From positions 14,260,001 through 14,324,000 of the forward strand of contig CP075495.1 of the NCBI GenBank assembly GCA_021613535.1: a stretch of 64,000 nucleotides of DNA, read 5' to 3'. The stretch's first letter is position 1. Each line of letters begins with the position of its first letter. This document shows positions 9,420 to 59,335 of this stretch, in pieces. The notes under the pieces are model-generated. The model was not told where the DNA came from and made no database searches. It saw only the letters and a program-made list of their open reading frames with translations. The position numbers and the translations under genes are program-made. The stretch is from Adineta vaga (lineage: Eukaryota > Animalia > Rotifera).

Positions 9420-12248
9420 TCAGACAAAATTATCATCCTCAAAAAGAAGACGTTCATTAGCATGACCCCATGAAGCTTGTTTTCCTCTACTTAATTGAAC
9501 TTTTTTCATTAATAATTCGTTCATTTGAGGACCAATATCACTAGCAACCTAAGAATTAAAGAAAAGAAGAAACAACATGACAATATTGATATTTTCTTCT
9601 TGTCAATAAAATATACTTTTGCCATTGAACGAATATTTAATGCATCAAGACTACCACCACCATCTTTATTCATATAAACTATAGAACCCGATGGTTTTAT
9701 TCCGTAAGTTATTCTAAATAAAGAAAAATAAAAGTTTATTAAATCAATATTAAAGATTATTTCTACCGTGCTAATGTGACCGAATCTTCTTTGATCGATG
9801 TATCAACGGTATGAACTCCACTAATCTAAAAAATGAATCAATAAAATACTGATACGTTTTCTCTTTTACTTACTTGTCCAACAGTAATTAATACGGGTAG
9901 ATTGGAAACATCAAGAGTACCAAATTGATACGGATCATCACAGACATCCACGGAAACTTCATTCGTTTCTTCATCATGAGTGACTTTCAATGCTGGAACT
10001 CTAGAATAGTTAATAATTACATATTTTTTAGTAAATTTTTCTTCAATAATGTCTTTGTTTTTACTTTGTTTCACTCAATGCAGCTTTCATTGCAAATGAA
10101 CATGTATCATGAAGATTTCCTTCATAACGTAGAACCTTTTCGAAAAAAATAAAATAAAATAAAAATTTAATCTTTTATAGAATGATGAAAGATACTAAAA
10201 TCTAATAAATATTATATTTCCTAATCTGTATTTTTTTTTTCTTTTCTTTATCTCTGTTTAATCAAGTCGATATATCATTTTGATATTTTCAAAAGAAGAA
10301 TACTTACAGAAATATCGACATGAACAAGCCAACAATGATGTCCTTTGACTACACATAATTGACTGAGATCAAAACATTTCGAATTATTCAATATATAATT
10401 AAGACTTCTTGCTATTTGTTTTGTATATTGTCTTCTATGTCTTCCAAAGATTCTCAATGATCGACAACCACTTCTAAAAAAATCAAGAGAAAATAGATAC
10501 GCGCATATTTTAGTTTTTTTTCTTCTATTAATAAGAAAATAATATGAAATTAAAAGAATTTCGTATTCCAATGCCTTTAACAATTGATGAATATCATCTC
10601 GGTCAACAATGGATTGAAATTGAATTACTTAAAGAAACTTTACAAACATGTTTAACATGTGTAACTATTTATGATAATATCAATGAACAAGAAAAAATGA
10701 AAATAATCGATGAAAAAGTTCCATTATTATTCAAAACAAAGATAACATCATTGACATCAATGACACATAGAAAATATCATATTAAAGATCAAAAATCAAA
10801 ATTTTTAGATTTCATATTATTAAAACCAAAAACTGATCTTATTTTAGAAGAATATTCATGGGATTATTGGCCATATACATTGACAATTATTGAAAATCTT
10901 GAGAATTATATTCGTATTATTATTCAAAGTTATTGTCAGACGAATTCTTTCTCATCAATTAATCGAAATTCTCAAATGTGTTTTACTTTAAATAATGAAC
11001 AAATGAAGATTTTAAAAGATTATGAAATAATCAATATTTCAGAAAGATTCGATGATAAAAGAGATTATCGAATTGATGAAGATCCAACAAGAAATATTTC
11101 ATTAAGAAAACCAAATCTTCTTCCATTACAACTCAATAGTAAATGGTATGAAAATCAATCGACATTATGTGTTTATAAACTAATTGAACTTGTTATGTTA
11201 AATGAAAAGAATAATGAAAGATCATTGCTTTTCAAAGCAACAAATAAAATTATTGTAAAAGATTTTCAATGCATTTCTTTTTCTCATTTAAATGAAAATA
11301 TTTCATTTCTTTTTCCGAAAAGTGGTCATCGATTATTAAAACACAAAGAATGCTCTATCATCGTTTTCATCAGAAAATGATCTGTAATATTGATCAATGG
11401 ATTGATAAAACAATAACGAATATTCGTGAAGAAGAAAAATTATTGAAAACATTTATTTTACAACATCAACAAACTCAGTTAGGACATATGAATAAATAAC
11501 TTACCCATCAACAGTTGCTTCTATTCGACCTTCATTGGGTTTATCTTGACTCGTACGACTGAATTCAAATGTAATACCAACCATAACAATTGTACCACCC
11601 TAGAAGAACATTTATTCCTATTGATTTTTGTCGTATTTCTAATAAAACTTACTAATTTAAGTAGACAGGAACCATTTGCAGTATTGACAACATCAGTAGC
11701 AAGTAGTAAGGGACGATAGGAACGACAATCTCGACCATCATTACGAAAATTTGACTAAAAAATAGAGAATTATTTTCAACTAAATTAATAATCGCGAAGA
11801 TTTTTCTATTCAAAAAATGTGAGAGTATAATACGAAATACACGAGATGGCTGATTTTTAAAATAAACTCTTTCGATTCCAAATATAGATCATCTAACATA
11901 AAGCTCAATTTAAACATTGCCAATCATTTCGAATGTTTTCTCTAATAACGCAAGACAAAGTCAAAAGTACCATCATTAACGATTAGATTAGTTTCCTGTT
12001 TATTCATAAAGTCATTTTCAATAAGACGAAATAGAGTCTCAACAATCCAGAACTTTCTTTTATCCTATCTCACAGACAAGAGTTAAGTGAAGCGAATAGA
12101 CAGGAAAAGGAAATAATCTTCTTATGACGTACAATCCATTTTTCATTTTAATATAAATATATATTTATCATCGAAGAATTCTTCTTACCTGTATTCCATC
12201 TACAATGAATTTTCTTTCATCTTCACTTGCAAGAGGTACACGAGGCAT
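9420..12248 (-). CDS. EXOSC7: Exosome complex component RRP42 (RNase PH-like), multi-exon
   Basis: MPRVPLASEDERKFIVDGIQ | NFRNDGRDCRSYRPLLLATDVVNTANGSC | ...FDLSQLCVVKGHHCWLVHVDI | ...DVCDDPYQFGTLDVSNLPVLITVGQ. The DDPY motif is typical of Rrp42. Confidence 0.85.
10544..11499 (+). CDS. Divergent phosphatidylinositol transfer protein (PITP/IP_trans domain), nested antisense in an EXOSC7 intron, 2 exons
   Basis: N-terminus MKLKEFRIPMPLTIDEYHLGQ, then EYSWDYWPYTLT, DYRIDEDPT and LCVYKL. After intron 11255-11322 comes FHQKMICNIDQWIDKTITNIREEE. All are PITP hallmark motifs. Confidence 0.82.
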
Positions 12249-16272: not shown

Positions 16273-19200
16273 CACAATCAACTTATGTAGCACACCGATT
16301 CATTTGACCGATCGGACAATTCGATATTTTTTTCCTCCTTTTTCGTTTCTTTGCTCTTTTCTTTTTTCTTTCTCGCTAACAAAAGAAAAGGAAAAGATAT
16401 AATTCGTCGAGGTATATAGCAGCGAACATGATGCACAGAACTAGACAAGACCTAATTTTTCACAATATCACATGAAATAAAAAGAAGGTCTCATATAGAT
16501 TGTGCAACACCTTCAGCAGCATTAATGATCTGATTTTCTTTTATGAAAAAAATCGATCATTTATATAGGATGAGAAATAATTTGAAGAAATCCCGTCAGT
16601 TGTTTACTGATAAGTAAAGCAAGAAGAAGAAGAAGAAGATGAATTTGATATGGTCTCATGAATTCTATGCATATTAACTAGATGTGAACACCTGACTGTG
16701 AACACTCACACACACGCAACAGGTGGCTTTTTTTCTTTTTTACTAATGAGAAAGATTCAAAATTTTTATGATTGTGATGAACTGACGTGGAAAACGAGTA
16801 GTATTGAAAAAACATAATCTTACTTGAAATTTTCCTGTTTTGAATTTACGTTCGAGAATTAATGATGAAAAATCAGGCTAAAACATAAAAGATGTATTCG
16901 AGAAAACTCTAAATGATGTTCTTCATACTGAAATAGATCGTTTTAAAGGCCGTAAAATTGATGAACTATTTTCATCATTTATTTGTATCATCATTGATAA
17001 TGATAGATCTACAATAAAAAAAAAGAAAGTCAAATGTTAATCATTTGTTTATCATCGTCATCAGATTACTAAAGTCTTTTCATTGTTTTAGAAAAAAAAT
17101 ATAAAAGAATAAAATTCTGTTTGCTTTTTTCTTTTAAAATCTACTCATTGCATATAAGACTTCGGAGAAGGCAATGGAGACGAATAAGAAAGAAAATAAG
17201 CTGATTGATTACTCTTTGCATGGCCTTACAATGGCTTATTAGTTAGTTTCACAGATAGCCATCAAGATTTCATGCAAATATTTTTTTACTCAACACGCTT
17301 TATTTCATCATATGACGATTAAATTAGTGTGAAGAAACTTAAATCATTTTAATGTTATGGATGAAACATAAGAAACTTTGTTTACGAATGACTAAGACTA
17401 ATGAATGTGATCATGATCAAATTTATTTACGTATTTTGTTTTTCCAATCAACAACCTTTGTTATTTGGAGCAGTAAGTTTGAAAACTACTGGTTATAATA
17501 AATGATGTCGTTTTTCTTCCTTCGATATAGATGGCAGTAGTAGTCGTTCATATGTCCGAAGAGAATGTTCAAACTATATATATTGGGTGCAGGATAAATG
17601 AAAACGTCTGCTCTTGGATATTTTCGTTCAATCCATAAGATAATAGTTGTTTTTATCTATTATTCAAAGTTCAACTATGGAAATAAGTATTGGCAGGTAG
17701 AAATAGTTATATTACTCTTGTCGTCATCGCTTTCGATGTTATTAAAAACATCGATCTATGTTAATTTCGAATAGACAAGTGGAATATCAAGAAACCGGAA
17801 ATGGTTACGTTTGATAAATTGAAATATCTTTTTTGTTTCTCCTTTGTAAATACATGTTTATTTTACTTATGTCTTGTTTTAAATAAAATGAAATGAAAGT
17901 TGACAGTAAGCAATGACACGCATGAAGTTATAATTAAGCTCCAAAGCCATGGGACACACCCACATCCTCATCGTTGATACTTCCTATATATCGTTAAGGA
18001 AAATAGAAATTTTTAGGAAAACTATTCTGTAGGAACGTCCTTTGCACTCAATATACCACCTAAGAGAGCATCCTTGGACCTCATGTACTCTGATATTGAA
18101 TTGTACCATTAAATAGACTATCTAACTATGAATCCAAATATAGGAATTTTTTCTGAAAGGTGTTTAAGAAGGTGACCGGTGAAATTTTGGTTGAGTCTTC
18201 TCATGTATCCAGGTTATGGAAAAATTCAAATATAAGAAAGATCTATATAGAGTCACCGAGTTATATATTCTATACTTAGGTATTCAAGGAATTGTTCTCC
18301 TTTACGAATTTCTCTCCCTGTTTGTATTGAAAGAAGACTAGAAAATACTGAAGAAACACCGAAATTTGGTTCAGTCATTCTTCTCAAATCTGGATTCTTA
18401 CTGACCAGTATATTCAATAGAAAAGAAAAACTACTCGACGAACGATTAGACGTTGATTTCAGACACGCGTCATTATTGCACATCGATTTTTTAAATAAAC
18501 AAAATCGTCATATTAGACAAAGAAACTATTGTGGATGTACATTCAACAACTAAATGTTCATTATCATGTGTAGTTATTTCAATGTACAGAATGAAAAACT
18601 TCAAAAGATCTAATATAATCGGTTTCATCGACATCGACGATGAATATATACAAAAAGAAATATGTGTGAACTCGAGATAGAACGACTTAACCACTCGCAA
18701 AAGATTGCTACTCTTGTCATTCTCTGAATGTCAATCAGAAAATACGAACGGAATATAAGTACGGATCACTACATAAACATAAAACACTGTTTGTGTTTAC
18801 AAATGCATCTCGCCGCATTTGATTGAAACTCGAGTATATCGGAAACTGCATCCAGATGGGATTTATGTTACATTGTGTCTCTGCGCATTTGTTAGTCGAC
18901 ACTGAGATGCAGTCTTTTCTCTAAAAGTTTCTATTTTATGTTGAAAGATGTACGAATACAGAACATCTTTCTGTCATCAGACATAAAACGTCAGATCCAA
19001 GAAGCAACTAAATAGAGTTGTAAAAATCGTCATTCACTTCATCTTGAGGGCAAACCCAACTCTCTAGCGTTCAGATATACTAAAGATTTGCGATACACAC
19101 AGACATTAAACTAAACTCTCGGTTATGAGAAATACTCAAAATCAAGTTCGGAAGTATATTTTGCTACGTTTTTAATCCCGACACAGTATTTAAGAAATAA

Positions 19201-19638
19201 TTTCCCAGTCGTTCCCAATAGATCAACGATTGGAATGCGTGCAGCGGAGCTATTAAAAGGCTTATAGCATGCACCGACGGTTGTGCTTTTTCTTCATAAC
19301 CTTTGTGTTGTTGAAACTTTTTCAGAAGACATGATCTTAAGAGTACATAGTTTCAGAAAATATGATCTCATACCCATCAAGCTTCTCCCATAATTGATAG
19401 GCTATAGTGCATTTCAAACACGCGCTTTCACTTTACCGGACCTACACAAATCAAAAACTTAGATGAAACATCCACCTCTTTCAGTCGGAAATCATGAGTT
19501 ATAAACACACGAACCTATCATACAAATAATACGACTTCGAAACACAGAGTGTATTCTATTTTCTACCCATCAGTTCGCTCTAAAATCAAACTCTCCCAAA
19601 AAACCAATACAAATCAATGTCCATTCAGCCCGCCCTGA

Positions 19639-22273
19639 CTACCACTTCACCCTGTTTCCAAAACGATTTCGAAGATATTCTGCTCCCTGTTCGCCAATTC
19701 CATTGTAGCGCAGTCTTAGTGTGCTGAGTGTCTATGTATCAGAGAAACAGAGCGTGGAGATGTGAATTAGGTGAAGGGTGAATGACTATTACCGTGTTTG
19801 TTCGCAAGCCATCAGTAATGTTTTGTACTCCTTGTTCGCCGATTGGATTGCTCCCGAGATCTAGCGTGGTGAGTGTCTATGGACAAGAGAGAGTATCGGG
19901 GTGAGCATTAGGTGAAAAGCAAATGACTATTACCGTGTTTGTTCGCAAGGCATCAGCAATATGTTGTGCTCCTTGTTCGCCGATTTGATTGTCGTAGAGA
20001 CTTAGTGTGGTGAGTGTCTTATGGACAAGAGAGAGCATGAATGTGTGAATTAGGTGAAGGGTGAATGAATATTACCGTGTTTTTTCGCAGGGCATCAGCA
20101 ATATGTTGTGCTCCTACATCGCCGATTCGAATGTCTAGTAGGTCTAGTGTGGTGAGTGTCTATGGACAAGAGAGAGCATGGAGGTGTGGATTAGATAAAG
20201 AGCGAATGACTATTACCATGTTTATTCGCAAGGCATCAGTAATATGTTGTACTCCTTGTTCGCCGATCGGATTGCTCCCGAGATCTAGCGTGATGAGTGT
20301 CTATGGACAAGAGAGAGCATGGAGGTGTGAATTAGGTGAAGGGTGAATGAATATTACCGTATTTGTTCGCAAGGCATCACTGATCTGTTGTACTCCTTGA
20401 TCACCGATTTGATTGTAGTGGAGACTTAGTGTAGTCAGTGTCTATGGACGAGAGAGAGAGAGAGAGAGAGCATGGAGGTGTGAATTAGATGAAGAGCGAA
20501 TTAATATTACCGTGTTCGTTCGCAAGGCATCAGCAATATGTTCTGTTCCTTGATCACCGATATGATTGCCTGCGAGATCCAGTGTGTTGAGTATCTATAG
20601 ACAAGAGAGAGTATGGACGTCTCATTCGGATGAAGGGTGAATGAATATTACCGTGTTTTTTCGCAAGACATCACTGATATGTTGTATTCCTTGTTCGCCG
20701 ATTACATTGTACGCGAGATTTAGTGTGGTGAGTGGCTATAGACGAGAGAGAGTATGTGGGTGTGAGTTAGGTGAAAAGCAAATTAATATTACTGTGTTTG
20801 TTTGCAAGGCATCACTGATATGTTGTATTCCTTGTTCGCCGATCTGGTTGCGTTCGAGTTTTAGTGTGGTGAGTGTCTGTGGACAGGAGAGAGCATGGAT
20901 GTGTCAATCAGGTGAAGGGTGAATGACTATTACCATGTTTGTTCGCAAGGTATCAGCAATATGTTGCGCTGCTTGTTCGCCGATTGGATTGCACCCGAGA
21001 TTTAGTGTGGTGAGTGTCTATAGACGAGAGAGAGCATGGATGTGTCAATGAGGTGAAGAGCGAATGAATATTACCGTATTTGTTCGCAAGGCATCACTGA
21101 TATGTTGTGCTCCTTGATCACCGATTTGATTGTAGTGGAGACTAAGTGTAGTCAGTGTCTATGGACGAGAGAGAGAGAGTGAATGGAGGTGTGAATTAGA
21201 TGAAGAGCGAATGAATGCTACCGTGTTCGTTCGCAAGGCATCAGCAATATGTTCTGTTTCTTGATCACCGATTCGATTGTGGTGGAGATTTAGGGTGGTG
21301 AGTGTCTATGGACAAGAGAGAGAGCATGGAAGTGTCAATTAAGTGAAGAGTAAATGACTACTACCTTGTTTTTTCGTAAGGCGTCACCAATATGTTGTGC
21401 TTTTTGTTCGTCGATGTGATTGCCTGCGAGATTGAATGTGTTGAGTATCTATGTATAGAATATTTTTTTCGGAAATGTGAGTAAGGCGATCGGAACTTTA
21501 GGTATAGGTTTTTGAATTACATATAGTATTATACAAGAGCTGTGGTGGTGGTGTTGTTTGAAAGACTTCAGAAGGTGATTGGTTTGGGTGAGTCGGCTGA
21601 AAAGAAAAATGGTTGCTTGACTGATTATTACTGAGTTAGTATTCGAGTCATCGGATGAGTAGAGTGACTACTGTACTGAAGGCGATGATACCTGATTATT
21701 TCGAATGGTTTAGGATTGTCATTTTTACAGTTGGTTTGCGAGAGGTAGTAATGAGTCGTGGCATAATAGGAAATAGGTCACTCTATTTTATTCGGTGGGT
21801 TTCAAAGATAGTTGTGGCATTTTTTAGGAGTTGTGATAAAGACATTTGTTTGAAATGAGAAACGCGTTTTATAATTCTGTGGTTTTATTCTTTTTCGGTA
21901 CATGAGGGCACATTTAATAAGATGCATATTCTATAGACATGGATAGAAAAGAACAGATGAAGGGAAGGGTTGTTTTCAATAAGATGAGTCAATCTTGTGG
22001 GCGTTTCATTCGTGAAAATTGCTTCTGAATTGTGCAGAGTGGTTTTTCTTTGAGTAAACTCATTAAGTTAGATTTTATGAAGCTTATGTGTGCTTGAACA
22101 GACAGGAAAATAGGTAAAGCACTTAGCAAACGTACTTGATATCGATGATAAATGTTGAGAATTTGATTAAAACGTTTGCAAACATTTTGGATCGAAAAAA
22201 ATAGGGTAAAATCAGGCAGATGATCCAAAATCCGATAGACGAGCTCGATCGGTAATGTTGAAAATGTGTACAT
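19639..22273 (-). CDS. F-box + ribonuclease-inhibitor/NLRC3-type LRR protein: F-box exon (22273-22136), twelve 84-bp LRR exons and a terminal LRR exon
   Basis: F-box TLPIELVYRILDHL...VCKRFNQI...YQ|GT. LRR exons such as TLTTLDLGSNPIGEQGVQNITDGLRTNT are each flanked by AG/GT in phase 0 and contain no stops. The last exon reads TLSTLRLRYNGIGEQGAEYLRNRFGNRVKW*. The F-box-to-LRR1 junction across a ~690-bp intron is inferred. Confidence 0.85.
19732..21448. repeat. Tandem array of 12 units of ~141 bp (84-bp exon + ~57-69-bp intron)
   Basis: Exons at 19793, 19934, 20076, 20217, 20358, 20511, 20652, 20793, 20934, 21075, 21222 and 21365. Introns share the consensus GTAATATTCATTCACCCTTCACCTAATTCACACCTCCATGCTCTCTCTTGTCCATAG, and length varies mainly in the (CT)n tract. 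Confidence 0.95.
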
Positions 22274-22473
22274 ATTCGCTTTAGATTCTGCAAAAGTCAG
22301 CTGAGAATAGAAGCTATTGAATAAACTTTGTTTGTTATAAGAAATTTGCTTTACGAGAACTGAAAGTATTGTATTTTTGTTATTGAAAAAAGTGAATGAA
22401 GTCTGACGATTTCAACAAAAGCAAATAGTTAGTTAATGAAGAAAGATGGCGTTAATGTATGTGTTGAGATCAA

Positions 22474-22563
22474 GGGAGAAAAATCTCATTTCGGGGCATT
22501 CCGAATGCCATATAATGCGTGGGAATGCACCAGACTACCAGAATGCCGGAATGAGATTTTCCC
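22474..22563. repeat. ~90-bp imperfect inverted repeat (mini-MITE/hairpin) upstream of the F-box-LRR gene
   Basis: GGGAGAAAAATCTCATTTCGGGGCATTC pairs with GAATGCCGGAATGAGATTTTCCC. There is also an inner GGCATTC-C-GAATGCC hairpin. Confidence 0.65.
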
Positions 22564-23540
22564 ACTTGGTTTCAATATACTCTCAAGATACGTATTTTCC
22601 ATTAGTAGGTTTTGAGTTTTACAAAAGAGTTCATTTTAATAAAGGATATTTTTGCACGTCATATTCAACAAAAATTCAATCAGAAAAGGAAATCTTTGAG
22701 GGTAGGTGATGTCGATAGTCTCTTCTTTTCACACCCTCATAAACTAATTTCATTCTATTATAGTTCGACGTAATTCAATTTTCATTTCAAATATGTCTCC
22801 GTAAAGACCTTATTAAGAAAATAAATTGAATTAAAGAAAATAAAGCTGGTTCATCTTATCGCGATCTACGAGATAAATTTAATGTATGAACAATTAGTGG
22901 CGTATCAAATATTCTCAAAAGCAAGAGAGAACACATGAAAGTATAAACTAAGTTTGAGTCTGACTCTCACCTAGTTAACTGAGATTGTTGCATGTCTATG
23001 CGATCGTATCTTTAAGACGTTTTTCATTGATTACAATGGTGTTCAAATTAGACAGATTTTACTGTATTTTATTTTTCTCACACCTGATACTAGTTCGATT
23101 CTAGTTGTGTTCATTTATTGAATTATCATCTCTGGAATGATCGATAGTTTCTATTTTAATATTACTTAAATTTGAATGATGTTATGTATAAATAACGCCG
23201 GACTGATTGTACTATCGAATTATATCTATAAAAATCTATATGATGTTGTTTGTTTTGCAGTCGGTCGTCGTCGGCCCTTCAAACCGTCACTCCTAACTGC
23301 TCAAGTGACGGAATCGCATGTAAGATCACATACAGTTGTACACATCCTTTTCGTTAACTACACATCAACTAGAAAAAGACAGATCACATGTGAGTAACAG
23401 CTTATTGTGTCCCAACAGTACGCGTTGAGAAAAGATAAGTTCGTATCAGTTTACAACATCATTCAATCGCACTCAAATATTACTACCCGAGACGGTAAAC
23501 ACGGCGAACAGAAAGATCGAAGACGAAAGCGCGTATCTAG

Positions 23541-23754
23541 CTCGTACTGAAGGGTACAGCAATACTTTTATGTTGTTTCGCCTTTAACTTTTGACCCTTC
23601 ACATTGATCCCAGCCATCATCCTACCCTCACCCTAATCTCGATAACTAATATTTAAGACAGTCTCGAAGAAAATGTTTTCTTGACCTTTGGCTCTGACAC
23701 AAAACCACATAGAAACTTTTTTTTTCTATATGACTCTCCTTTCAGCCGAGGGAA
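23541..23754. mobile_element. Non-autonomous Helentron/HINE-like element, copy 2
   Basis: End TTGACCTTTGGCTCTGACACAAAACCACATAGAAAC...TATGACTCTCCTTTCAGCCGAGGGAAT matches 7348-7434. Imperfect inverted repeat CTCGTACTGAAGG / CCTTTCAGCCGAG. Confidence 0.5.
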
Positions 23755-24420
23755 TAAGCTGTGGATGGAAGTGTTCCTTGACAGAGTACACAACACACAA
23801 ATACGTCTACAAAAGGAGAAAAGACGGATCCTGGATTCTCATAGTTCCTGAGATCGTAGAATTCATGTAGATTTGCCTGTCATGAGATCCTACAATTCAT
23901 GATGATCCATTAGGATCCGAAAGTTTTATAGGTTCCGCTTTTTCTCCTTGCACACAAACGTCTAAACCCACCCTCACTGTCACAAATAGACTGTGTGAGT
24001 TCCACATTTTAGTCATAATAGGACTGCGCTGAAAAGCGTTTTTTTGTAGTGCTTATATGAATGACTCATTCGATAGGTACAGAATAAGACTACCATATCC
24101 ACATATGGTAATTTTTATAGTTTTGATTGATGAATAATCCAGCTCGTATTCAAAAGGTATCGTATGATGATATGAAAACGAGCATATAGAGTAAATATTG
24201 GTATAAGATTTCAATAGCATATACACTTCTTTTAGATGATGATACTATAGTCATTAATGTTATGAAAAGGGATGTATTCGAAAGAAGTAAATAATTTATG
24301 TATATGTCTAGAGTGATTAATAAAAAGAAAAGAAAAACGTTATAGAATGTATTGCTTAACAGAATATTTCTTTTTGCAATATCGATCGAACATAAACGTA
24401 ATATACTAAGTACAAATATA

Positions 24421-44696: not shown

Positions 44697-47600
44697 TTAC
44701 AAGTATGGTTGCCAACCTGCAAATAATTGTGACAAATTTTCAATGCTTGTTGCTTCTTGTATTAACATATTTACATGTGCTTTAATGGTCATTTGATTTA
44801 AACGTTCTACTCCTTGTAATTTCTGACGAACACCTAACAGAAGCCGTTCAGCCATTTTATTTGTATCTAAAAGAGATAATCATATATTTAGATATGAAAA
44901 ATTTCGAATATACGTTTGTTCTCAATCAAACCTATTGTAACTGATTCATTTGTTGTATTTGTTGTCGATGAAGATGGTCCAGGTGGTGGTAACATACTTC
45001 CTTTACCAGAAGATCGATATGACGATGATTGAACTGAATCACTATTTGTTTTATCAAACTGTTGTTGAAGTTGTAAAGCTTTTTGAGGTGATAATTGCCA
45101 TTGATAAAGTGGATCATAAAGAAAAACTTCAATAATTGTTATTAATGTATCCGCATATTGACGCATCAACTCAAGCGTTATTTCACAACTTCTAAAAAAC
45201 ATAAATTTTCATTAGAAAAAAGAAAGATCTCTGTCTCGGTTTTTTTCTTCTCATCGTACTTCTTAAAAAGACCTTGTGTACCGCATATACCAAGACCATC
45301 AATAACATCTCGTGTTAACCGAAATGGAATTGTTTCTGGAATAGGTAACCTGAAAATGAAAATGAAAACGATTTTTTTTATTAGATTTAAATATACGTAA
45401 AATCTCACGAACATTTTGCCTTGATCAAAAGCAACGCCCAAATCAATATGAATAACTTCAGCTGTTTGTGTATCAATTAGAATATTCTGTACATGACGAT
45501 CACCAAGACCAACAATATAACCGAGAATCGATGATGTTGCAACACTTTTTGCATATGCTTGTTTTTTTCTATGCCATATATTCGATTTATTATAATATTC
45601 ATAAAAGAAATATCGAAATACAGGTCGTAATTTTGTACATGCTTGTATAAATGCACGTTGTCGTTCATCTTTACCTGAATTTGTAGCTTTATGAATATGT
45701 CGACGACAATCCATAGCTGTCCAATCATCGGGATGATAACGTTGATGAGCACCATCCGGTTTAGTTAGATAATCACCAAATGTTATTGTACCTTCACACC
45801 ATTCTAAGACACCACTTTTTTGTCTACGAAAAATTTCAAATCCTAAGAAACATATAATCTATCAACTAATTATTAAAACATACGTTAAAGGAACAACTTT
45901 ATATGTTCGAATATTCATTGATTGATGGCATGTGAGTTCATCTTTATCTAATAAACGATTCACAACAGTAAATAATTGTTGCATAACTGCATCTTGTCTC
46001 AAATCATCCTTTCCTTTTAATAATTGTGGTAATTGTCGACCTGTTGAACTATGACAAAGAAGTTTCTTTGGTGCATTCACACCTCCGACCATTGCATATT
46101 CAGCATTGAAACTTTTCACAGTTTCGACGTTTTTATAAACACCATCATTTGCAACCTGAAATCAAATGTTTGTCTACTGAATGAAACGAAAAAAACAAAC
46201 AAACATCTTCTTTACCGGTATTGTTATTGTTGGTACCGCGACTTCGTGAAAATCTTTGATATGCATAAGTCGAAGATGTTTCGAAAACGTTGGATTTTTT
46301 CCTTGTTGATCTGTTTTCGTCGGTGTAACATCCCAATAAGCAGCTTCAATATAAGCATCATTTAATTTTCTCATTTGATCAACTAATTCTGGTTTGACTT
46401 TGGCACATTCATCTAATAAATATTGTGCAGCTCGTGAACGAGCATCATTATTACTTTCATAATTTAATTGAATAAGTTCATTATTAGTTGTTGTTGTTGT
46501 TTTCTTTGTTGTACTCGATTGTTGCTGAGTAATATGTGCATCTTTATGTGCATTGGCAAGAGCGAAAATAACCGGTAAAACATGATGAGGATGATCAATA
46601 ATACATTTCGATAAATATTCGAGAAGAATTGTATGAAAAGCGAATGGTAATTTATCATTGATAAAAGCCATTCTTGCTGCCATTTGATAAACAAATGGTA
46701 AGAAAAAATGTGTTGGTATATTTAAAAGATTTTTTTTCAAAGTTTTATTCACTTCTTCATTATTACAATTTGTTAACCAATAGGAAAGACATTTTGAAGT
46801 TATCATTATTTCTGGTACAGAATTATTTTTAATAATATCAATGGATATGGATGGATTTTTCTGTTGTCTTTTTGATAAATCGGAAAATAATTTTAAACAT
46901 GTTAAGTAATTATTTAATGTTGAAATTAAATAACTGTATTGTAATCGTTTTTGTTCTTCCATTTCTTTTCGATCCATATCTAAACTACGTTTTAATACTT
47001 TTGTATAACGTCCTAGTGGATCTAATTTTTCTTGTTTATTATATTCTATTTGATTTCGTTTGATTAATGAACGTTTATTTTCAAACATTGGAGAATTAAG
47101 TAATTGATTTAAACGTTGATATTCATTATCACTAAAATGTGCCATAGCTAAATAGGATTCGAATATTAAAGATAATGATGATAGATTAAGAGTTTTCACT
47201 GATGTTGAAATGGCATCAAGTTGTTGTTTAATTGTTGAAGATGTTTCACATCGTGTTTCATTGAGCCATTCACATAATAATAAACGACAACGAATATGAA
47301 TCGAATCAGGTAAAGGAGATTGTATTAATTGTCGAAGATATTCACCAGCTGTATCTTGTTGACGAAGAACAAGAACTTTAGCACGAAGAAATGATAATTC
47401 ATGAGAATAAGATGAATCAATTAATGGAGAAAAATCACTTAAATATCGATCACATAACTAAATGACAAGAAGAATATTTGTGAAGAGAAAACAAAAGAAA
47501 ATATAAAAAAACCTGAAGTTTTTTTGATTCTAATGCATTTTGACATAATTGTGTAATAAGATCGACGAAAATTGTTTGTTTAATTTCTCGATTTTCAGAA

Positions 47601-50600
47601 TTTTGATGAATATTATGTAACAAGAGTTTTTGTGTGATAGCAATACGTGTCAATAAAATTTCATCATTATGATCAAAAAGATGATTATTCAAAGGATTCT
47701 TCCATATTTTTGATAAGATTTGTGGATTTTCATAATTTATTGTTATATCATCAATAATATTCACAAGAAAACATTCACGAAAATCTGATACATTTGACCA
47801 TAGATTATGATCAATTAATTGTGGTATAGATGATGATGAAATACGCATTTGACGTTGAATAATTGATACAATATCTTCTCGAACATGACTCAACGATTGT
47901 TCATCAGATGTTTGCCATTGTGTTAATCGATTTTGTCCAGTTATTATTCCTGTTAATTGAATACGATAAAAGATTTGATCAGATAATGAGGAAATTTGAT
48001 TTAAATATTGTTCGAGTATATGATTAAATCCACATAAACGTAATGATTGTATTAATTTCGATGAATTTATTGTTAATGCTGCTTGATCAAAATAAAATAA
48101 TGAATCATAATAATTATTATTCAATTGATTAAATTCTCCATAAAGATTTGGACGATTTTGAAAAAATTTATCTAAACCATAGAATTCTTCTGGTTGATTC
48201 ATATTCGAATGAATACGAACAAATAAATCAACTAATTCCGATGTATTCGATAATAAATCAATATCAGAATGATATAAATGTATTGAATAATCATTATCCG
48301 GTAAAATTGATCTAAAAATAACAATAATAAAAAGTTTTATGTCGAGAAAATTTGTTGAATTATCTCCTTTCTTTCTCTCTTTACCTTTGTTTTGTTGTCC
48401 AAATATCCGTATAGATAATAGCTGATTGATAACATTGATATTTCGATGCACATTTTGCTAATTGAAAATAATCGATATCTAACCAAAAATGATTATCAAA
48501 ATTGAGACTTGTCGATTTTCCTCCATTGCGTTTTGTTAAACTATCAATTGGACATTGATTTAAATAATGAATCGTTCGAAAAATACATTGAGCTATTTGA
48601 CTATAAACAACATTCTTTTCATTGGAATTTTCTAATAATTGTTCGATTAAAAACGAAACATTTTTTGTTAAAATTTCTCGCAAATTTAATTTCATTGGTA
48701 ATACTAATAAACAATGAATTAAATAAGGAAAGATTTTCTTTCCAAATTCGATTTTTAATTGAATTAAATGATTTAATTGATAGAATAAGAATACATATGG
48801 ATGTCCAGTTTCCTTTTGTTCAAAATAATAATATTCAATTTGTTTAAATAGGAAATTTATTAATGAAAGAAACCATTTTTCAAATGAAGATTTCGATTCT
48901 ATTAACCAAGGATTTGATGATGAAATGAAATTTGATTGAAATTTTCTTATTGAATTGATCGAAGAAAGAAATGGTTTGATATAAATTTGAATTAAATCAT
49001 TATTCAAATGTTTTTGATAAAGTTCTTGACCAAGAGAATGATTTAAGATTAGTTTTAATGTATAACGTGTACATTCAACAATTTCTTGTTCTTTATCAAT
49101 TAAATGAAACATAATTAAATCTTCAATAATCCAGATGGGAATTGGTTCATAGAGATCTTCATCAAGATTTTCTTCGTTCTTATCGAAGAGAAATAATGAA
49201 CATTTGGATAAACATTTTCCTGCAAGAATATGATTGTGTTTAGAAGTGATACATTCGATTAATTGTTGTTTAACTGAAGAGACTATTGTTGGATTGATAT
49301 CAAGAGAATGTTTGAAAGAATTTTGTCGTTCATTTTCAAGATGATTATGAAACATATTCAATATCCATTCAACTGGTAATGATGAACGACGAAGAGATAG
49401 ATAGAAAAGATAATCCGATGTTGTTATTGATTGATGTTTTCGTTTTATTTCAATTTTGATATAATCTCTAGATAAAAATCAAATCGATATCGGTTTTTTG
49501 TTTGTTAAGTAGGAGAAAAAAAAGAAGTTATTTACAATTTTTCAATTGTATATGAAAGTAAATTGAATACGGAATCATTATCATGTTTTATTGTTTGATA
49601 AATATGAATTAAAATCATTTGAATACGTTCTTTTGTTAAATATTCATCATAATTTATTAAAATTGAAACAATATCAGGAATATGATTAAGATAAATTGAT
49701 GAATCGAAGGCAAGTCCTTTGATACATAATTGATGAAGAAGTTTACATAGAATATTTAAAATTTTATCATTTAATTTTTGTTGATAGATTTCATGATATT
49801 TAATTTGTGAATATTTTTCGATATATCGTAATAGAATATAAGTTGAATCACGTAAAATACTATGTAGATATTCATTATCTATTATATTTAATAATATATC
49901 CGTGAGAAATAATGAAAATATATTAAATAAACGAAGTTGTTCATGAAGAGAATCTGTTGAGAATAATTGTGATGATAAACACAGAAGAATTTCTCCAATA
50001 TCCTAAAAAAAATTATATGAAATTGTCAAAACTATCAACTGTAAGAGGTGAAAAGTAAATTCTTATACCGTTAATTTCATGAATAATTCAAGTAACGTTT
50101 TCATATTCATTATTTGTTTAATATAATCTAATGTTGTTTTTATTATTGACCAAGAATAAACAGGTAAGATTGATTGTGGTGACCATGGATCATAAAATTC
50201 ATTATCTTGATCGTTTTGATAAGTTAGGAAAAGTTTGAAAATGATTATTGTTAATTTTTGTTTTATTAAACGATTATATTCTGATTTTGTAATGAATTTT
50301 TCAATAGTTTGTCGATGTTCTTCTGCACATTTGTTTTTCTTTATTAATAATGGTAAAAGAAACGCTTGTATTTGAGGAAAATATTCAATTAATGAAGATT
50401 TTATATCGGGAAATAGTCCAATTAATTCTCGACGTTCTTTTATTGTGGAAAGAAAATAAGTTGCAAAGATAAATGAACGATAGTCTTCATTGAGATGATC
50501 AATTGGAAAAAATTCCCATGGAAAATCTTTAATTTCATAAGATAATTGTTGATGATAGAATTGAATCATTCTTTGTACGGAAATATTCTTTGGTAGAAGA

Positions 50601-53600
50601 TATTTAACAATATTCTTTGATAATTTCTTTTCAAGTCCAAGTTGAATCAAATAAAATCCGATTTGATTTGAAAGATATTCACTTAGATCGATTAGATAAG
50701 GAAATAATGATGAATTAATTTCGATTAATTCATGATAGATCTTTTCTTGTTCTTCCGATGATTTCAATTGATTATTTTCATAGAACATCTTCACACAAAG
50801 TTTATTGACTTGTATTCGAACTAAATACGATGAATCATTGAGTATAGTTTGTATTTCATTAAGTGGAATAGTTTCATCTTGAACGAGAATTTGTTTGATT
50901 TCAACGATTGATTTTCTAATATGTTGATTTAATAGATGACTTTTATTCATTGTCATTTGCCAGAAGGCATCGATGATCTTTTTCATATGTAACCAATTTT
51001 CATCGATGAAGAAATCTTGTCGAATTTGTTTATAGAATTGATGAAGAAATAAATGAAAATATTCAAATAATTGTTGACATAGACGAATATCACGACGATA
51101 GATACGAAATGATTCAGTAAATAAATTGGTTAGATTTTCTAAATCATTAGGACGAAGAATAAATGTTTTCTTTCGAGAAATAAATGAGAAGAATTTGAGT
51201 AAATATTCATAAGAAATTGGATCAGGTAAGGAAAGTTCTTCGAGATAAACATAAATCTTTTCATCAAGAATACGAATTAATAGATTTTGATTTGATTGAT
51301 AAGTGAGAGAAGAATTGAATAGGAAAGATTTTGAAGAATTCTCTTGATCATATGTTGCTTGAAAACAAAGAAGAAGAAGGATTTCGAAAGATTGAAGTAA
51401 GAAGAATTTATCATTCGATTGATTATCAATTGGACATTGAATACCTTCGATATCGGATGATTTTTTTGTTGGAGATAGTTCTTGAATTGAATAATTGTAT
51501 AAATAGGAAAGAAATTTCGGTTCAAGAAATCCATAGAGAATCGAAGAGAATTTATTTAATGAAGGAGAAATTGGTTTAAGTAATGATGAAGATGTTGATA
51601 AATAAATGGAATTTTTTAAATGTTCAAATAAATCATTAATAAATGGAATTTCATGAGTTTTATCATAATGATAAACTGTTTCATCAGTTAATTCAGTAAA
51701 GAGAATTTGAATATTTTCAAGAAATGTAATTAGATTCTTCAGATTGAATTGATTCGATGAAATATAATTGAAGAATATGAAGAATATGAATACCAAGAAA
51801 TGCAAAATGAAGAATTAATCGATTACGTTCACCCTAAATAGACAAATTTGTATAGAGAAAATTGATTCTATTGAGAAAATTTTCTTACTAAATGTTTGTC
51901 TTTCAATTGTTGAATAAATCGAATTTGTTTTTCATAGATTTCTAAAATACGTTTGAAAATAGTCAAATTTAATTCACATGTATTCATTTTTGTATGAAAT
52001 TCTTCTTCATTTGATTGTTGTTGATTAACTGGATTTAGTAACTTTAATTGTAACCATTGATATTCGATTTGATCAAATTCATTTAAAATTAAATCTTGTT
52101 TTCTCTTGTCATTTGTTTGAAATGGTAATGTATCAAAAGAACTGAATTGCATTAGAATTGTTGCACATAGATGAGTATATTCCGGTGAATAGGATGAAAA
52201 AAATATGGATAAATCATATTCATTATGACGATATGAAGTAATAAGATCTGGTAGAAATTTATTTATGAATTTATTTTCATCTTCAGAAGAATATTGACGA
52301 TTGAACGAATGTGTTAAATAATTGAAAATCGATTTCATTGATGTTATAGATGAACATGAACAGAGATGTGATAGAGAGAAATGTTTATTTGGTAGAATTT
52401 CGATGACATAAGATTCACATATAGAAATATGTATTAAGGGTTGAATTAAAAGTATTAATTCTGATGTTAATTGACAATGTGTTGTATGAGTTAGAAGAAG
52501 ATGAAGACATCGAAGTGCATTGACGAGAAGTGATGGTCTAAATATAGAAAGAATTTGAAAAATTCATTGCAAAAGACAAATTATTACCTTCGTTCATCAG
52601 TTAAATATCGTTTGAGTACATTCATATAATAATCACAATCTGTTATAGATAATATCATATTTCGTTCGAGTTGTACTGAAAGTATTTGAAAACTAATTGA
52701 ATACGAAGATTTTTAAAATAATATCAAAGAAAAATTTGAATGTCTTTTTACCCAACAGCTTGATGATAGGAATCAATTGATTGAAATAGATTTTGAAATG
52801 ATTTCATTTGTGCATCAGTATTTGTTGAGATTGAAGTTGAATGTTCATAACGTGTTCGTTTGGCACTTGGTTCAAACAATTCATCAGTATCAATATCCAT
52901 AAGTTCATTTTTAATGAAAATTTCATTTGAAGAAAGCTATCGACATATGATTGAATTTATTTCAAAAAGAAGACGATCGAAAATACTCACTTGATAAAAT
53001 ACACTACTTGCTAAATGAAGTAAATCATATCGAATAAGAAATTCACTTTGATTTTGTCGATTATTTAAACGTTTTAAACATATTTCATCAATTTCTCTTA
53101 AAACTAAATCATTTATATCTCGAAGATTTTTCTAAACGAACAAGTTCGATGAGAATTTTTTAGCAAAAAAGATTTCATTTCATACCATCCAGATATCATC
53201 GTAAGTTTCTAAGGTATATTTTCTATGACATGGATGATGAATACTTAGTTGTAAACGACAAAATTTGATAATTTCCGTCTAAAATTTTCCGAGAAAGAAT
53301 TGTCTTTTCATCTCTTTAGTTCTTACTTTTGGCTTATCACTACATTTTCTTCTCCAAATATCGAGAATAGATGGTAGAAATTCATAACCTAATCGAAAGA
53401 CTTCATCTGGTAGATCAAATAAATATTTCCATGACCAAATATTGAGTGAACAAAGAAAATTTTCAATCACCGAAAAATGATTCGAATTTCTAGAAATTTT
53501 CAAGATTTAAACAAAGATTTGTCATTATTGATACTACATACGTTAGTTGTTCAATTTCATGTTGAAGAAAATCAAATAAATCTTTTTGTAATAATGATTT

Positions 53601-57894: not shown

Positions 57895-59335
57895 TTAAAC
57901 CTTAAGAAAAACTAATTTATCTTGTTCAAGAAGATTTTCATCATTAGTTGGATTGAGTGTATCATGTTTATTATTTGAAGTTGAACTCAATTTCCATCTT
58001 GCACTATGTGGACTTTGAATTGATGATGTTATTGTTATTCCACCGCAATTGGTTTGACTTGTAAATGAATGTTGATCATGATGATTAAAATTTGGTTGAT
58101 GAATTTGTAAATATTTTGTATTTGTGGAATTGATTTTTATTGTATGTTGATCTTTCAAATCATTCGTCACTGGTAACATACAGATTGATGTCGAACGAAA
58201 ACGTCGTTGATCTTGATATTCAACTAATACACGACGAAATTGTTGTGGTGTCGATGTACGTCGTTGATTGACAGCATTCATCATATCTGTATGTAACATT
58301 GTAGCAAAACTTGGTTTCGCTCGAAAATGTATTGTTTTCATTAATACATGACGAAATTCTGTACCCGATAGACAATAACTTAATATACTTGCATAATTAA
58401 AATACATAAGAATATTATAAACTGTCCATTGAATACGTCGACAACGCATATCATCAAGTGACGCTTTATGTGATAATAAATCGATAATAAATGCTGTAAC
58501 TGGTAATGTTGTTGCAACAAAGACAAATGATGAACAAATCATCATTAAACATAATGAACGTAGACGATTTGTTGCTTTGGAACGACTAACAATTTCACTT
58601 TTTCTATTAGGACCGGAAACAAGAAATACACGATTAATAACAGTTAAATTACAAAGAATTATAAATATAAATGGGATAATAGTGACAAGAAACATATCAA
58701 TCCATGTATAGATATGTTCGAAAAAATGTACATAATCAGGATGTAAATAACATTGTTGATATTGGAATGGATTAACAGTAGAACCTGTAGAATTGAAAAG
58801 CTTTTGTTGTTGATGATTATCATCACCTTGAACAAAGATTAATAGATGGATATTTGATAATGAGAGAACAGCAAAGACAATCGTTGAGTTGATTGATGCT
58901 TGCCGTGTTCGACACCATTTCGATGTATATATAGGAAATTTAACTGCAACATAACGATCTAAATTTAAGCAACATCGAAACCAAGATGAAAGATGAAGAG
59001 TATTACTAAAATAAATCAAATCAAATCAATCTTTCTTTCTTTCTTTCAAGAAAATAAACTTACTAGAAGAAGAAAACATGTAATTTACATAATAATGTTC
59101 CTTGTATATGAATATGAAAATTCGATGATAAAAGTAAATCACGTAATAAACCAATATATAAAAGAACTGTATCAGCAATTGCCATAAATGTTAAATAACG
59201 ATAAACACTATGTTGTCTCATTTGAATTAAAACAATAATTGACAAAAGATTTCCAACTGTTCCAATTCCGAGTAAAAATGGATAAGTATATAATTCAATG
59301 TGACGTGCAATTTCTTCTCGAAGTGAACAATTCAT
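57895..59335 (-). CDS. Class A (rhodopsin-like) peptide GPCR, FMRFamide-receptor-like, 2 coding exons
   Basis: TM1 GTVGNLLSI, TM2 MAIADT, TM3 LDRYVAVKFP, TM5 IIPF, TM6 TTLP and TM7 YCLSGTEFR. Confidence 0.87.

Follow-up and report, generated by a model that had tools for sequence, protein, structure and literature searches.

A transcribed F-box and leucine-rich-repeat gene of Adineta vaga in a dispersed family with apparent diversifying selection at predicted contact codons

Architecture and expression of the gene

A 64,000-nt stretch of the genome of the bdelloid rotifer Adineta vaga (assembly GCA_021613535.1, contig CP075495.1, positions 14,260,001 to 14,324,000; called the window below and numbered from its own first letter) carries on its minus strand, from 22273 to 19639, a gene consisting of an F-box exon, twelve exons of leucine-rich repeats (LRRs) and a terminal exon. 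The gene is transcribed and spliced, it belongs to a large dispersed family, and a few codons of its repeats, predicted to line the surface on which a target would be bound, have changed faster than silent and intron sites. The locus has a G+C content of 0.41 against a background of 0.26-0.32, and its GC skew is strong.

An initial annotation, made from the letters alone, had described twelve 84-bp exons in phase 0, each encoding one 28-aa LRR, within exon-plus-intron units of about 141 bp. This description is accurate throughout: a scan for AG, 84 nt with an open frame and then GT returns exactly these twelve 28-codon exons and no others, every exon is in phase 0, and Tandem Repeats Finder reports a period of 141 bp with 12.1 copies (77% matches, 19716-21453). 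Each exon follows the single-repeat consensus TLTTLxLxxNxIGxxGAQHIxDALRTNT, and the thirteen xLxx motifs that had been listed match one for one, twelve in the LRR exons and the last, RLRY, in the terminal exon. The introns of the array have GT..AG ends; seven measure 57 nt, the remaining five 58, 59, 61, 63 and 69 nt. All 14 exons are open and every GT and AG site is intact, including the canonical acceptor of intron 1, giving a model of 46 + 12 x 28 + 30 = 412 aa. The gene and its parts are as follows.

22136 to 22273, minus strand: exon 1, ATG and a 46-aa F-box; phase 0 at its 3' end, followed by a GTACGT donor; an RNA contig ends the exon at 22136
21449 to 22135, minus strand: canonical intron 1, 687 nt; its acceptor ...catag| at 21449 is conserved in paralogues
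AG at 21598-21597, with an alternative exon from 21596, minus strand: alternative acceptor in intron 1, from a 152-nt RNA contig
21365 to 21448, minus strand: LRR exon 1 (NLAG), the most diverged unit, without a Pfam match when taken alone
21222 to 21305, minus strand: LRR exon 2 (NLHH), from the exon scan; LRR_6, E = 0.004
21075 to 21158, minus strand: LRR exon 3 (SLHY); LRR_6, 22.9 bits; 96% identical to exon 8
20934 to 21017, minus strand: LRR exon 4 (NLGC), exon scan and Pfam
20793 to 20876, minus strand: LRR exon 5 (KLER), exon scan and Pfam
20652 to 20735, minus strand: LRR exon 6 (NLAY), exon scan and Pfam
20511 to 20594, minus strand: LRR exon 7 (DLAG), mosaic of an exon 1-like 5' half and an exon 2-like 3' half
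20358 to 20441, minus strand: LRR exon 8 (SLHY), inside a spliced RNA contig
20217 to 20300, minus strand: LRR exon 9 (DLGS), entire in the spliced RNA contig, with both adjoining 57-nt introns removed
20076 to 20159, minus strand: LRR exon 10 (DLLD), 5' part in the spliced RNA contig
19934 to 20017, minus strand: LRR exon 11 (SLYD), preceded by a 58-nt intron
19793 to 19876, minus strand: LRR exon 12 (DLGS), exon scan and Pfam
19639 to 19731, minus strand: terminal exon (RLRY), a half-repeat and C-terminal tail, 30 aa, TAG stop

With start codon, F-box, continuous array, terminal exon and stop all present, this is not an incomplete germline gene of the kind from which variable lymphocyte receptors (VLRs) are made, and no extra LRR cassettes lie beside it in the window. 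The terminal exon agrees with that of the paralogues in length, in its ...YLRN.FGNR... tail and in the position of the stop. A 182-residue extension ahead of the F-box exon, present in an annotated A. vaga protein, was sought by tblastn and found neither in the window nor in another copy; we regard it as a model specific to that locus.

The evidence for transcription consists of low-depth contigs (2.4-3.6) from two runs that we guessed to be RNA; none of the runs recorded as RNA contains the stretch. A 210-nt contig joins 20435-20358, 20300-20217 and 20159-20112 with zero mismatches, so that two 57-nt GT..AG introns are removed from the array exactly as predicted. Another, of 152 nt and likewise with zero mismatches, connects 22136 with 21596, beyond which it continues unspliced as far as 21492. 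This junction adds 32 in-frame codons after the F-box, ends in a TAA at 21500-21498 and leaves the LRR exons out of frame, and the AG that it uses is missing from all seventeen aligned paralogues. In annotated proteins of Adineta ricciae, A. steineri and Rotaria the F-box is joined directly to the LRRs (...RYQ straight into the first repeat); this joint and the intact acceptor before 21448 identify 22135-21449 as the canonical intron 1 of the family. The window copy has gained a copy-specific, non-productive acceptor and makes at least one non-productive isoform. Contigs of such low depth give no isoform proportions, and the window copy may also yield the full-length protein.

The initial annotation had further proposed that any exon could be skipped, duplicated or exchanged without a frameshift. 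The phase-0 exons and the footprints of in-register recombination described below bear out the modular part of this claim; skipping was not seen among the joints in the low-depth RNA contigs at the locus. Two joints considered as exon skipping, 19985>21222 and 21017>21079, were set aside, carrying 32 and 4 foreign letters respectively and hence coming from paralogues or chimeric contigs. DNA contigs of a 2013 run, none of which spans the array, match the assembly but for one SNP at 21144, and in these short assembled contigs no somatic variation was found.

Domains, fold and variable codons

The proposed combination of an F-box with repeats of the ribonuclease-inhibitor (RI) type agrees with the domain searches. 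Exon 1 matches Pfam F-box PF00646 at 27.7 bits (cut-off 20.5) and PF12937 at 26.4 bits (cut-off 24.3), in both cases over profile positions 1-37 and thus nearly the full length of the model, and carries the F-box signature LP..E and VCKRF. LRR_6 (PF13516) is the best family for nine of the ten LRR exons scanned singly, at 12.6-22.9 bits against a whole-protein cut-off of 23.4, and annotated relatives in A. ricciae, A. steineri and Rotaria reach 99-121 bits with the same family.

For the fold, an AlphaFold2 model was made of residues 1-215 of an A. ricciae relative, rather than of the window protein, from an alignment of twelve relatives. Its LRR part (pLDDT 80-97) repeats strands and helices with a period of 28 residues; in each unit, positions 4-6 form the strand and 13-26 the helix. 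The best solved matches in Foldseek are NOD2, NLRP3, ribonuclease inhibitor and axonemal LRR proteins (TM 0.75-0.81), with root-mean-square deviations of 1.5-2.0 to the first three, and the relative is accordingly predicted to form a horseshoe of the RI/NLR type. Given the positions of strand and helix, the fast-changing positions of the repeat (6, 8, 9, 11 and 14) correspond to the last strand residue, the following loop and the first helix turn, and in the model they form one stripe on the concave face and rim. The placement of the variable residues on a binding face, as first proposed, thus has the backing of the relative's model, which locates them where the beta-strand ends and in the beta-alpha loop.

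Annotated proteins of Adineta and Rotaria combine this 28-aa LRR_6 module with B-box/RING, with ADP-ribosyltransferase, and with kinase plus U-box domains, and some of these may be merged gene models; the pattern suggests one recognition module common to several effector types in bdelloids. Skp1 itself is multi-copy in the A. vaga genome: eight matches to the Skp1 domain score above the Pfam cut-off, among them C3:4379158, C6:12323741 and C6:12327684, the last two 4 kb apart; the Skp1 genes are split into exons. One protein of 1,246 aa, encoded on a metagenome contig in ENA, aligns with the F-box exon over 17 separate stretches, and would be an array of F-box-like motifs.

The variation was studied in 324 units taken from 24 genes in the fetched loci, the variable codons being picked from the 312 units of the 23 genes other than that of the window. 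Unit positions 6, 8, 9, 11 and 14 have entropies of 1.6-3.1 bits and the others mostly less than 1 bit, in keeping with the original remark that variation is concentrated at few codons. Changes in the window array were then counted by parsimony on a tree of its twelve units, built from the remaining codons and the introns. Per site there are 3.76 nonsynonymous changes at the five variable codons, 1.41 synonymous changes over all codons, 1.21 changes in introns and 0.78 nonsynonymous changes at the other codons. A ratio of nonsynonymous to synonymous change (dN/dS) of 1 or less at the concave positions had been named in advance as evidence against the proposal; the variable codons have in fact changed 2.98-fold faster than silent and intron sites (binomial p = 2e-8), while scaffold codons run at 0.62 of the neutral sites (p = 0.005).

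Across the family, dN over the global dS is 5.6, 5.7, 3.1, 2.1 and 1.9 at codons 8, 9, 11, 6 and 14, and dN over the local dS is 3.1-5.1 at codons 9, 11 and 14 (p <= 0.004). Unit pairs picked by intron identity give a neutral rate that is biased low, and we have used tree counts and all-pair estimates; the latter give a nonsynonymous diversity (pN) of 0.378 at variable codons against a synonymous diversity (pS) of 0.168 in the scaffold and an intron diversity of 0.145. Inside single recent arrays the ratio reaches 4-7. In the F-box exon, the most conserved coding part of the family, pN/pS between the window copy and its paralogues is 0.052/0.251, or about 0.2. These comparisons, made among paralogues and with recombination present, point to diversifying selection at the predicted contact codons, and to purifying selection on the scaffold codons and the F-box.

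The 324 units contain 176 distinct sets of the five residues, of which 23 are common to more than one gene, and the ten sets of the window gene are all private to it. Synonymous diversity is very uneven among codons; that of codon 8 (0.336) is nearly matched by that of the non-variable codon 13 (0.328), which gives no sign of a targeted mutator.

The introns had been described as at least as well conserved as the variable codons, and as homogenised. They are indeed less variable than those codons, but no better conserved than silent sites (1.21 vs. 1.41 changes per site), and mean identity between units of the window copy is 0.79 for exons and 0.75 for introns. Since the introns change at the silent-site rate, the window copy offers no case for special homogenisation or conservation, and the latter half of the description falls. 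Other arrays are more uniform (intron diversity 0.05-0.09), which fits more recent duplication or conversion there. Even pairs with identical introns differ at 11% of silent exon sites, so the units are mosaic. A block of units was duplicated, 2-4 matching 7-9 at 88% identity where the background is 78%, and exon 7 combines a 5' half resembling exon 1 with a 3' half that is 98% identical to exon 2; block duplication and mosaic exon together indicate in-register unequal exchange over evolutionary time.

The gene family and its dispersal unit

The paralogous arrays of the genome, which the initial annotation had proposed to count, were sought in 100.8 Mb (six contigs), all counts being lower bounds. 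The 2.6-kb gene has 66 matching stretches, distributed over all six chromosomes; their identity is 70-89%, mostly 76-81%, and 38 of these places contain the 5' end of the gene. A search with the F-box exon at E <= 1e-5 returned 139 exons; 132 of these are free of stops, and in about 47 the amino-acid identity is 78% or higher. On these sequence counts the family appears to comprise at least about 45 dispersed close copies (38-47) in A. vaga, with arrays of 3 to at least 23 units per gene among the 24 genes taken. It is bdelloid-specific and strongly expanded. The 139 F-box exons have a 46-codon exon and its 3' boundary in common, with identities to the window exon from 93% down to about 40%; they often lie within 1-3 Mb of chromosome ends, and those of chromosome 3 are mostly distant ones.

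Five other copies are 92-96% identical to each other over a common stretch of about 1.9 kb upstream, the gene itself and 5.5-5.8 kb downstream. The full family unit, within which the majority of copies are found, measures 10-12 kb (e.g. C4:1002400-1011840 and four other copies). Its 5' end is common to four copies and its 3' end to five, both sharp and with unrelated flanks. The 5' end begins with TC and a short palindrome, and the common 3' end reads ...GTTACTTGT; a Helitron-like reading of the unit, from the TC start and the palindrome, is only a guess. Self-BLAST of the unit found no long terminal or terminal inverted repeats, inspection of the aligned unit ends by eye found no target-site duplication, and pLTR-like repeats were not found at the ends. 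Outside the gene the unit contains no long open reading frame (ORF), the 5.8 kb downstream included. A second gene was considered, the candidates being downstream ORFs of 75-96 aa and an upstream ORF of 125 aa, and was rejected, as these match no Pfam family; no Rfam family was matched either. To judge by its ends and its dispersal, the unit behaves like a non-autonomous mobile one. The window copy retains the following parts of it.

18479 to 23867, minus strand: stretch common with the dispersed family unit, about 1.3 kb upstream, the gene and 1.16 kb downstream
23230 to 23538, no strand given: insertion of about 310 nt in the upstream part of the unit, missing from the paralogues, with separate copies elsewhere in the genome
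18480 to 19030, no strand given: 3' conserved segment of the unit, 82-94% identical to paralogues

This is the internal 5.4 kb only, broken by the insertion and lacking both unit ends. The ends of homology with the window copy are common to more than 25 copies, and others extend about 0.6 kb further upstream and about 4.6 kb further downstream. The window copy is about 80% identical to every other copy, which marks it as an old singleton lineage, and its silent divergence from the rest is about 20-25%; on this sequence evidence it is apparently an old, partly stripped member that has not been recently homogenised. Relatives of the 310-nt insertion lie at C5:15790383, C6:1396204, C5:2450722 and C4:14367484; such separate stretches elsewhere make it a small dispersed repeat, in which no terminal inverted repeat was found. 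The segment at 18480-19030 is better conserved than the sequence just past the stop codon and the introns, which are 65-80% identical, and exceeds the level of about 75-80% seen at intron and silent sites. It contains no convincing ORF and has no Rfam match, and may have a regulatory function or be a functional non-coding element of the unit.

Elsewhere in the window there are a 580-aa open frame without a Pfam family (50063-51805, minus strand; G+C 0.25, GC skew 0.26), an exon of a rhodopsin-type G-protein-coupled receptor (57895-59019, minus strand; 7tm_1, E = 4e-11), an exon of a phosphatidylinositol transfer protein (10544-11380, plus strand; E = 1e-18) and a weak HEAT/ATR-like match (46174-47199, minus strand).

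Function, origin and relation to known systems

The window gene is a germline-encoded, transcribed F-box-LRR gene, and we consider it rather likely that it acts as a substrate receptor of a Skp1-cullin-F-box (SCF) ubiquitin ligase, in a birth-and-death family under diversifying selection. Its array would have grown and been reshuffled by in-register tandem duplication and unequal crossing-over of the 141-bp exon-intron units, while whole genes would have spread through the genome inside the 10-12 kb transposon-like unit. We infer that the F-box docks on Skp1, and that the stripe of fast residues on the concave face and rim of the solenoid binds a target, which would then be ubiquitinated. The mostly private residue sets of the paralogues would be the product of birth and death of genes together with diversifying selection on target recognition, the targets being possibly non-self or selfish-element proteins.

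Several observations weigh against this. The sole contig that crosses the F-box donor uses the non-productive acceptor, at the low depths of 2.4-3.6, and the window copy is without both ends of the repeat unit. It is assigned to LRR_6 through exons scanned one at a time and through relatives, and confidence is low (pLDDT 46-63) for the F-box in the relative's model. As to selection, the local synonymous count is high at codons 6 and 8, where local dN/dS is 0.98 and 1.35, and the five variable codons have some 3.3 synonymous changes per site in the window array (a derived value). Multi-step codon paths, which inflate local synonymous counts, or patchy gene conversion may explain part of the excess, and the nonsynonymous excess is robust only at codons 9, 11 and 14. 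The comparisons are moreover among repeats and paralogues, with no orthologues, and recombination violates the tree.

Some of these points could instead mean that the window copy is a decaying and effectively non-functional relic, transcribed and spliced but giving no full F-box-LRR protein. Its copy-specific acceptor with a stop 32 codons on, its reduction to the internal part of the unit, the upstream insertion and the very low RNA depth all fit such decay, as do the loss of scaffold glycines from LRR exon 1 and a scaffold pN/pS of 0.53 vs. 0.2-0.45 in most paralogues. We nevertheless think this unlikely, for a relic would hardly be expected to keep 14 open exons with every splice site intact, the canonical intron-1 acceptor among them, a terminal exon of family length with its stop, an F-box pN/pS of 0.2 and a scaffold significantly slower than neutral sites, and a single low-depth contig gives no isoform proportions. 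A different doubt concerns the family as a whole, whose gene might be the passenger of a selfish mobile unit, with variable codons that reflect relaxed constraint and gene conversion. The unit has sharp common ends and unrelated flanks, is found on six chromosomes, often near their ends, and has no long ORF of its own; A. vaga, in addition, mobilises intron-containing host genes in trans, an LRR gene included (PMC3846280). Relaxed constraint, however, cannot raise dN threefold above the silent and intron rate, and the F-box and scaffold remain under apparent purifying selection in copies about 25% diverged at silent sites. Nearly all of the F-box exons (132 of 139) are stop-free, and F-box-LRR genes built in this way are found in Rotaria and in further species of Adineta as well; mere carriage seems to us quite improbable.

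Still less probable is that no SCF receptor is involved and that the solenoid acts alone, as an RI-like inhibitor, a scaffold or an axonemal LRR protein, capped by something that only resembles an F-box. The modest F-box score of 27.7 bits, the poorly predicted F-box part of the model and the presence of axonemal LRR proteins and ribonuclease inhibitor among the top Foldseek matches would suit it. Yet both F-box models are matched nearly in full, signature included, the F-box exon is the best conserved coding part of the family, and fusions of the same LRR module to RING/B-box and U-box in bdelloids speak for a ubiquitin-linked use. Least probable of all, to the point of being very hard to credit, is the anticipatory system of the initial annotation in its strong form, one that would diversify inside single animals or clonal lines, through exon skipping, exchange of cassettes or targeted mutation, so as to recognise new foreign proteins. 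Symmetric phase-0 exons would allow skipping and exchange without a frameshift, footprints of in-register exchange exist, synonymous counts are raised at some fast codons and unit number differs among paralogues. But the germline gene is complete, with no bank of partial donor cassettes beside it, the joints of full identity are constitutive only, the others coming from paralogues or chimeric contigs, the 2013 DNA contigs equal the assembly but for one SNP, and the synonymous diversity of codon 8 is equalled at codon 13. Diversity spread over about 45 fixed, ordinary paralogues is the pattern of an innate multigene family, and an anticipatory or somatically diversifying system is not supported.

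A germline-encoded SCF receptor would have counterparts in the FBXL class (Skp2 and other FBXL proteins; TIR1/COI1 in plants), where an LRR solenoid, the part expected to bind the substrate, likewise comes after an N-terminal F-box. Repeats of the FBXL class are about 26 aa long and contain cysteine. Those of the rotifer are of the 28-aa RI/NLR type (LRR_6), and its F-box is joined without a linker, with one repeat per exon and some 45 or more near-copies. The VLRs of lampreys and hagfish are extracellular proteins with 24-aa repeats, and their incomplete germline genes are assembled somatically from flanking cassettes in a process linked to cytidine deaminases. The rotifer family resembles them in the variable concave-face residues of its LRR modules and in diversity by recombination of LRR units, but differs in that the gene is complete in the germline, of intracellular type and normally spliced, its diversity lying in many fixed paralogues.

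Expansions of F-box and BTB adaptors in nematodes and plants were reportedly found by Thomas in 2006 to be under positive selection, and are said to have been proposed to target foreign proteins for degradation. Such families (for Caenorhabditis, see the F-box survey PMC8665587) are likewise large and of fast turnover, with a conserved F-box and an adaptive substrate-binding part; in nematodes the binding domain is FTH/FBA2, in contrast to the LRRs, tandem single-repeat exons and 10-12 kb dispersed unit of the rotifer. In the LRRs of NLRs and ribonuclease inhibitor, exons of equal length have the same border in every repeat and can be dropped without a frameshift, a property that NLRP3 uses for alternative splicing (Hoss et al. 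2019, PMC6642158). Fold class and strict exon modularity are thus common to NLRs and the rotifer gene, whereas NLR exons of 171 bp encode two repeats (28 + 29 aa) and the rotifer exons of 84 bp, separated by 57-nt introns, only one (PMC6642158), and the alternative splicing of NLRP3 LRR exons has no counterpart among the low-depth RNA contigs at the rotifer LRR exons.

The lineage-specific expansions that Arkhipova et al. (2013, PMC3846280) list for A. vaga include LRR proteins, and the same authors describe intron-containing host genes, an LRR gene among them, that Penelope machinery has copied to new sites. Those copies depend on Penelope, while no pLTRs or target-site duplications were found at the ends of the F-box-LRR unit, and the same paper contains no description of an F-box-LRR family, its exon structure or its selection pattern. 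No paper describing the Adineta family was found in the literature searched. A fungal-challenge study of bdelloids dealt with genes acquired horizontally and did not explore those of metazoan immune type (PMC11258130).

We would offer one broader proposal tentatively, being doubtful of it as a whole. The about 45 core genes, with up to 23 repeats each and with contact residues that are mostly private to the gene, may constitute a germline repertoire for intracellular surveillance in bdelloids, which would hand pathogen, viral and transposon proteins to SCF; the LRR module would be reused with RING/B-box, U-box-kinase and ADP-ribosyltransferase partners, and new receptors would arise through unequal crossing-over of exon-intron cassettes and through the transposon-like carrier. 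The window copy itself matters less; it serves mainly as an outgroup in which the pattern is still seen at about 25% silent divergence.

For bdelloid rotifers, as ancient asexuals, it is an open question how they keep pace with coevolving pathogens. A large family of ubiquitin-ligase adaptors whose binding faces evolve fast, built of modular exons and spread by a mobile carrier, would be a concrete and testable candidate for germline-encoded diversity of recognition. It would extend the idea of F-box immune adaptors from nematodes and plants to a third lineage with a different binding domain, and the surveillance repertoire, if true, would be an innate substitute for the sexual shuffling of resistance alleles in an asexual animal.

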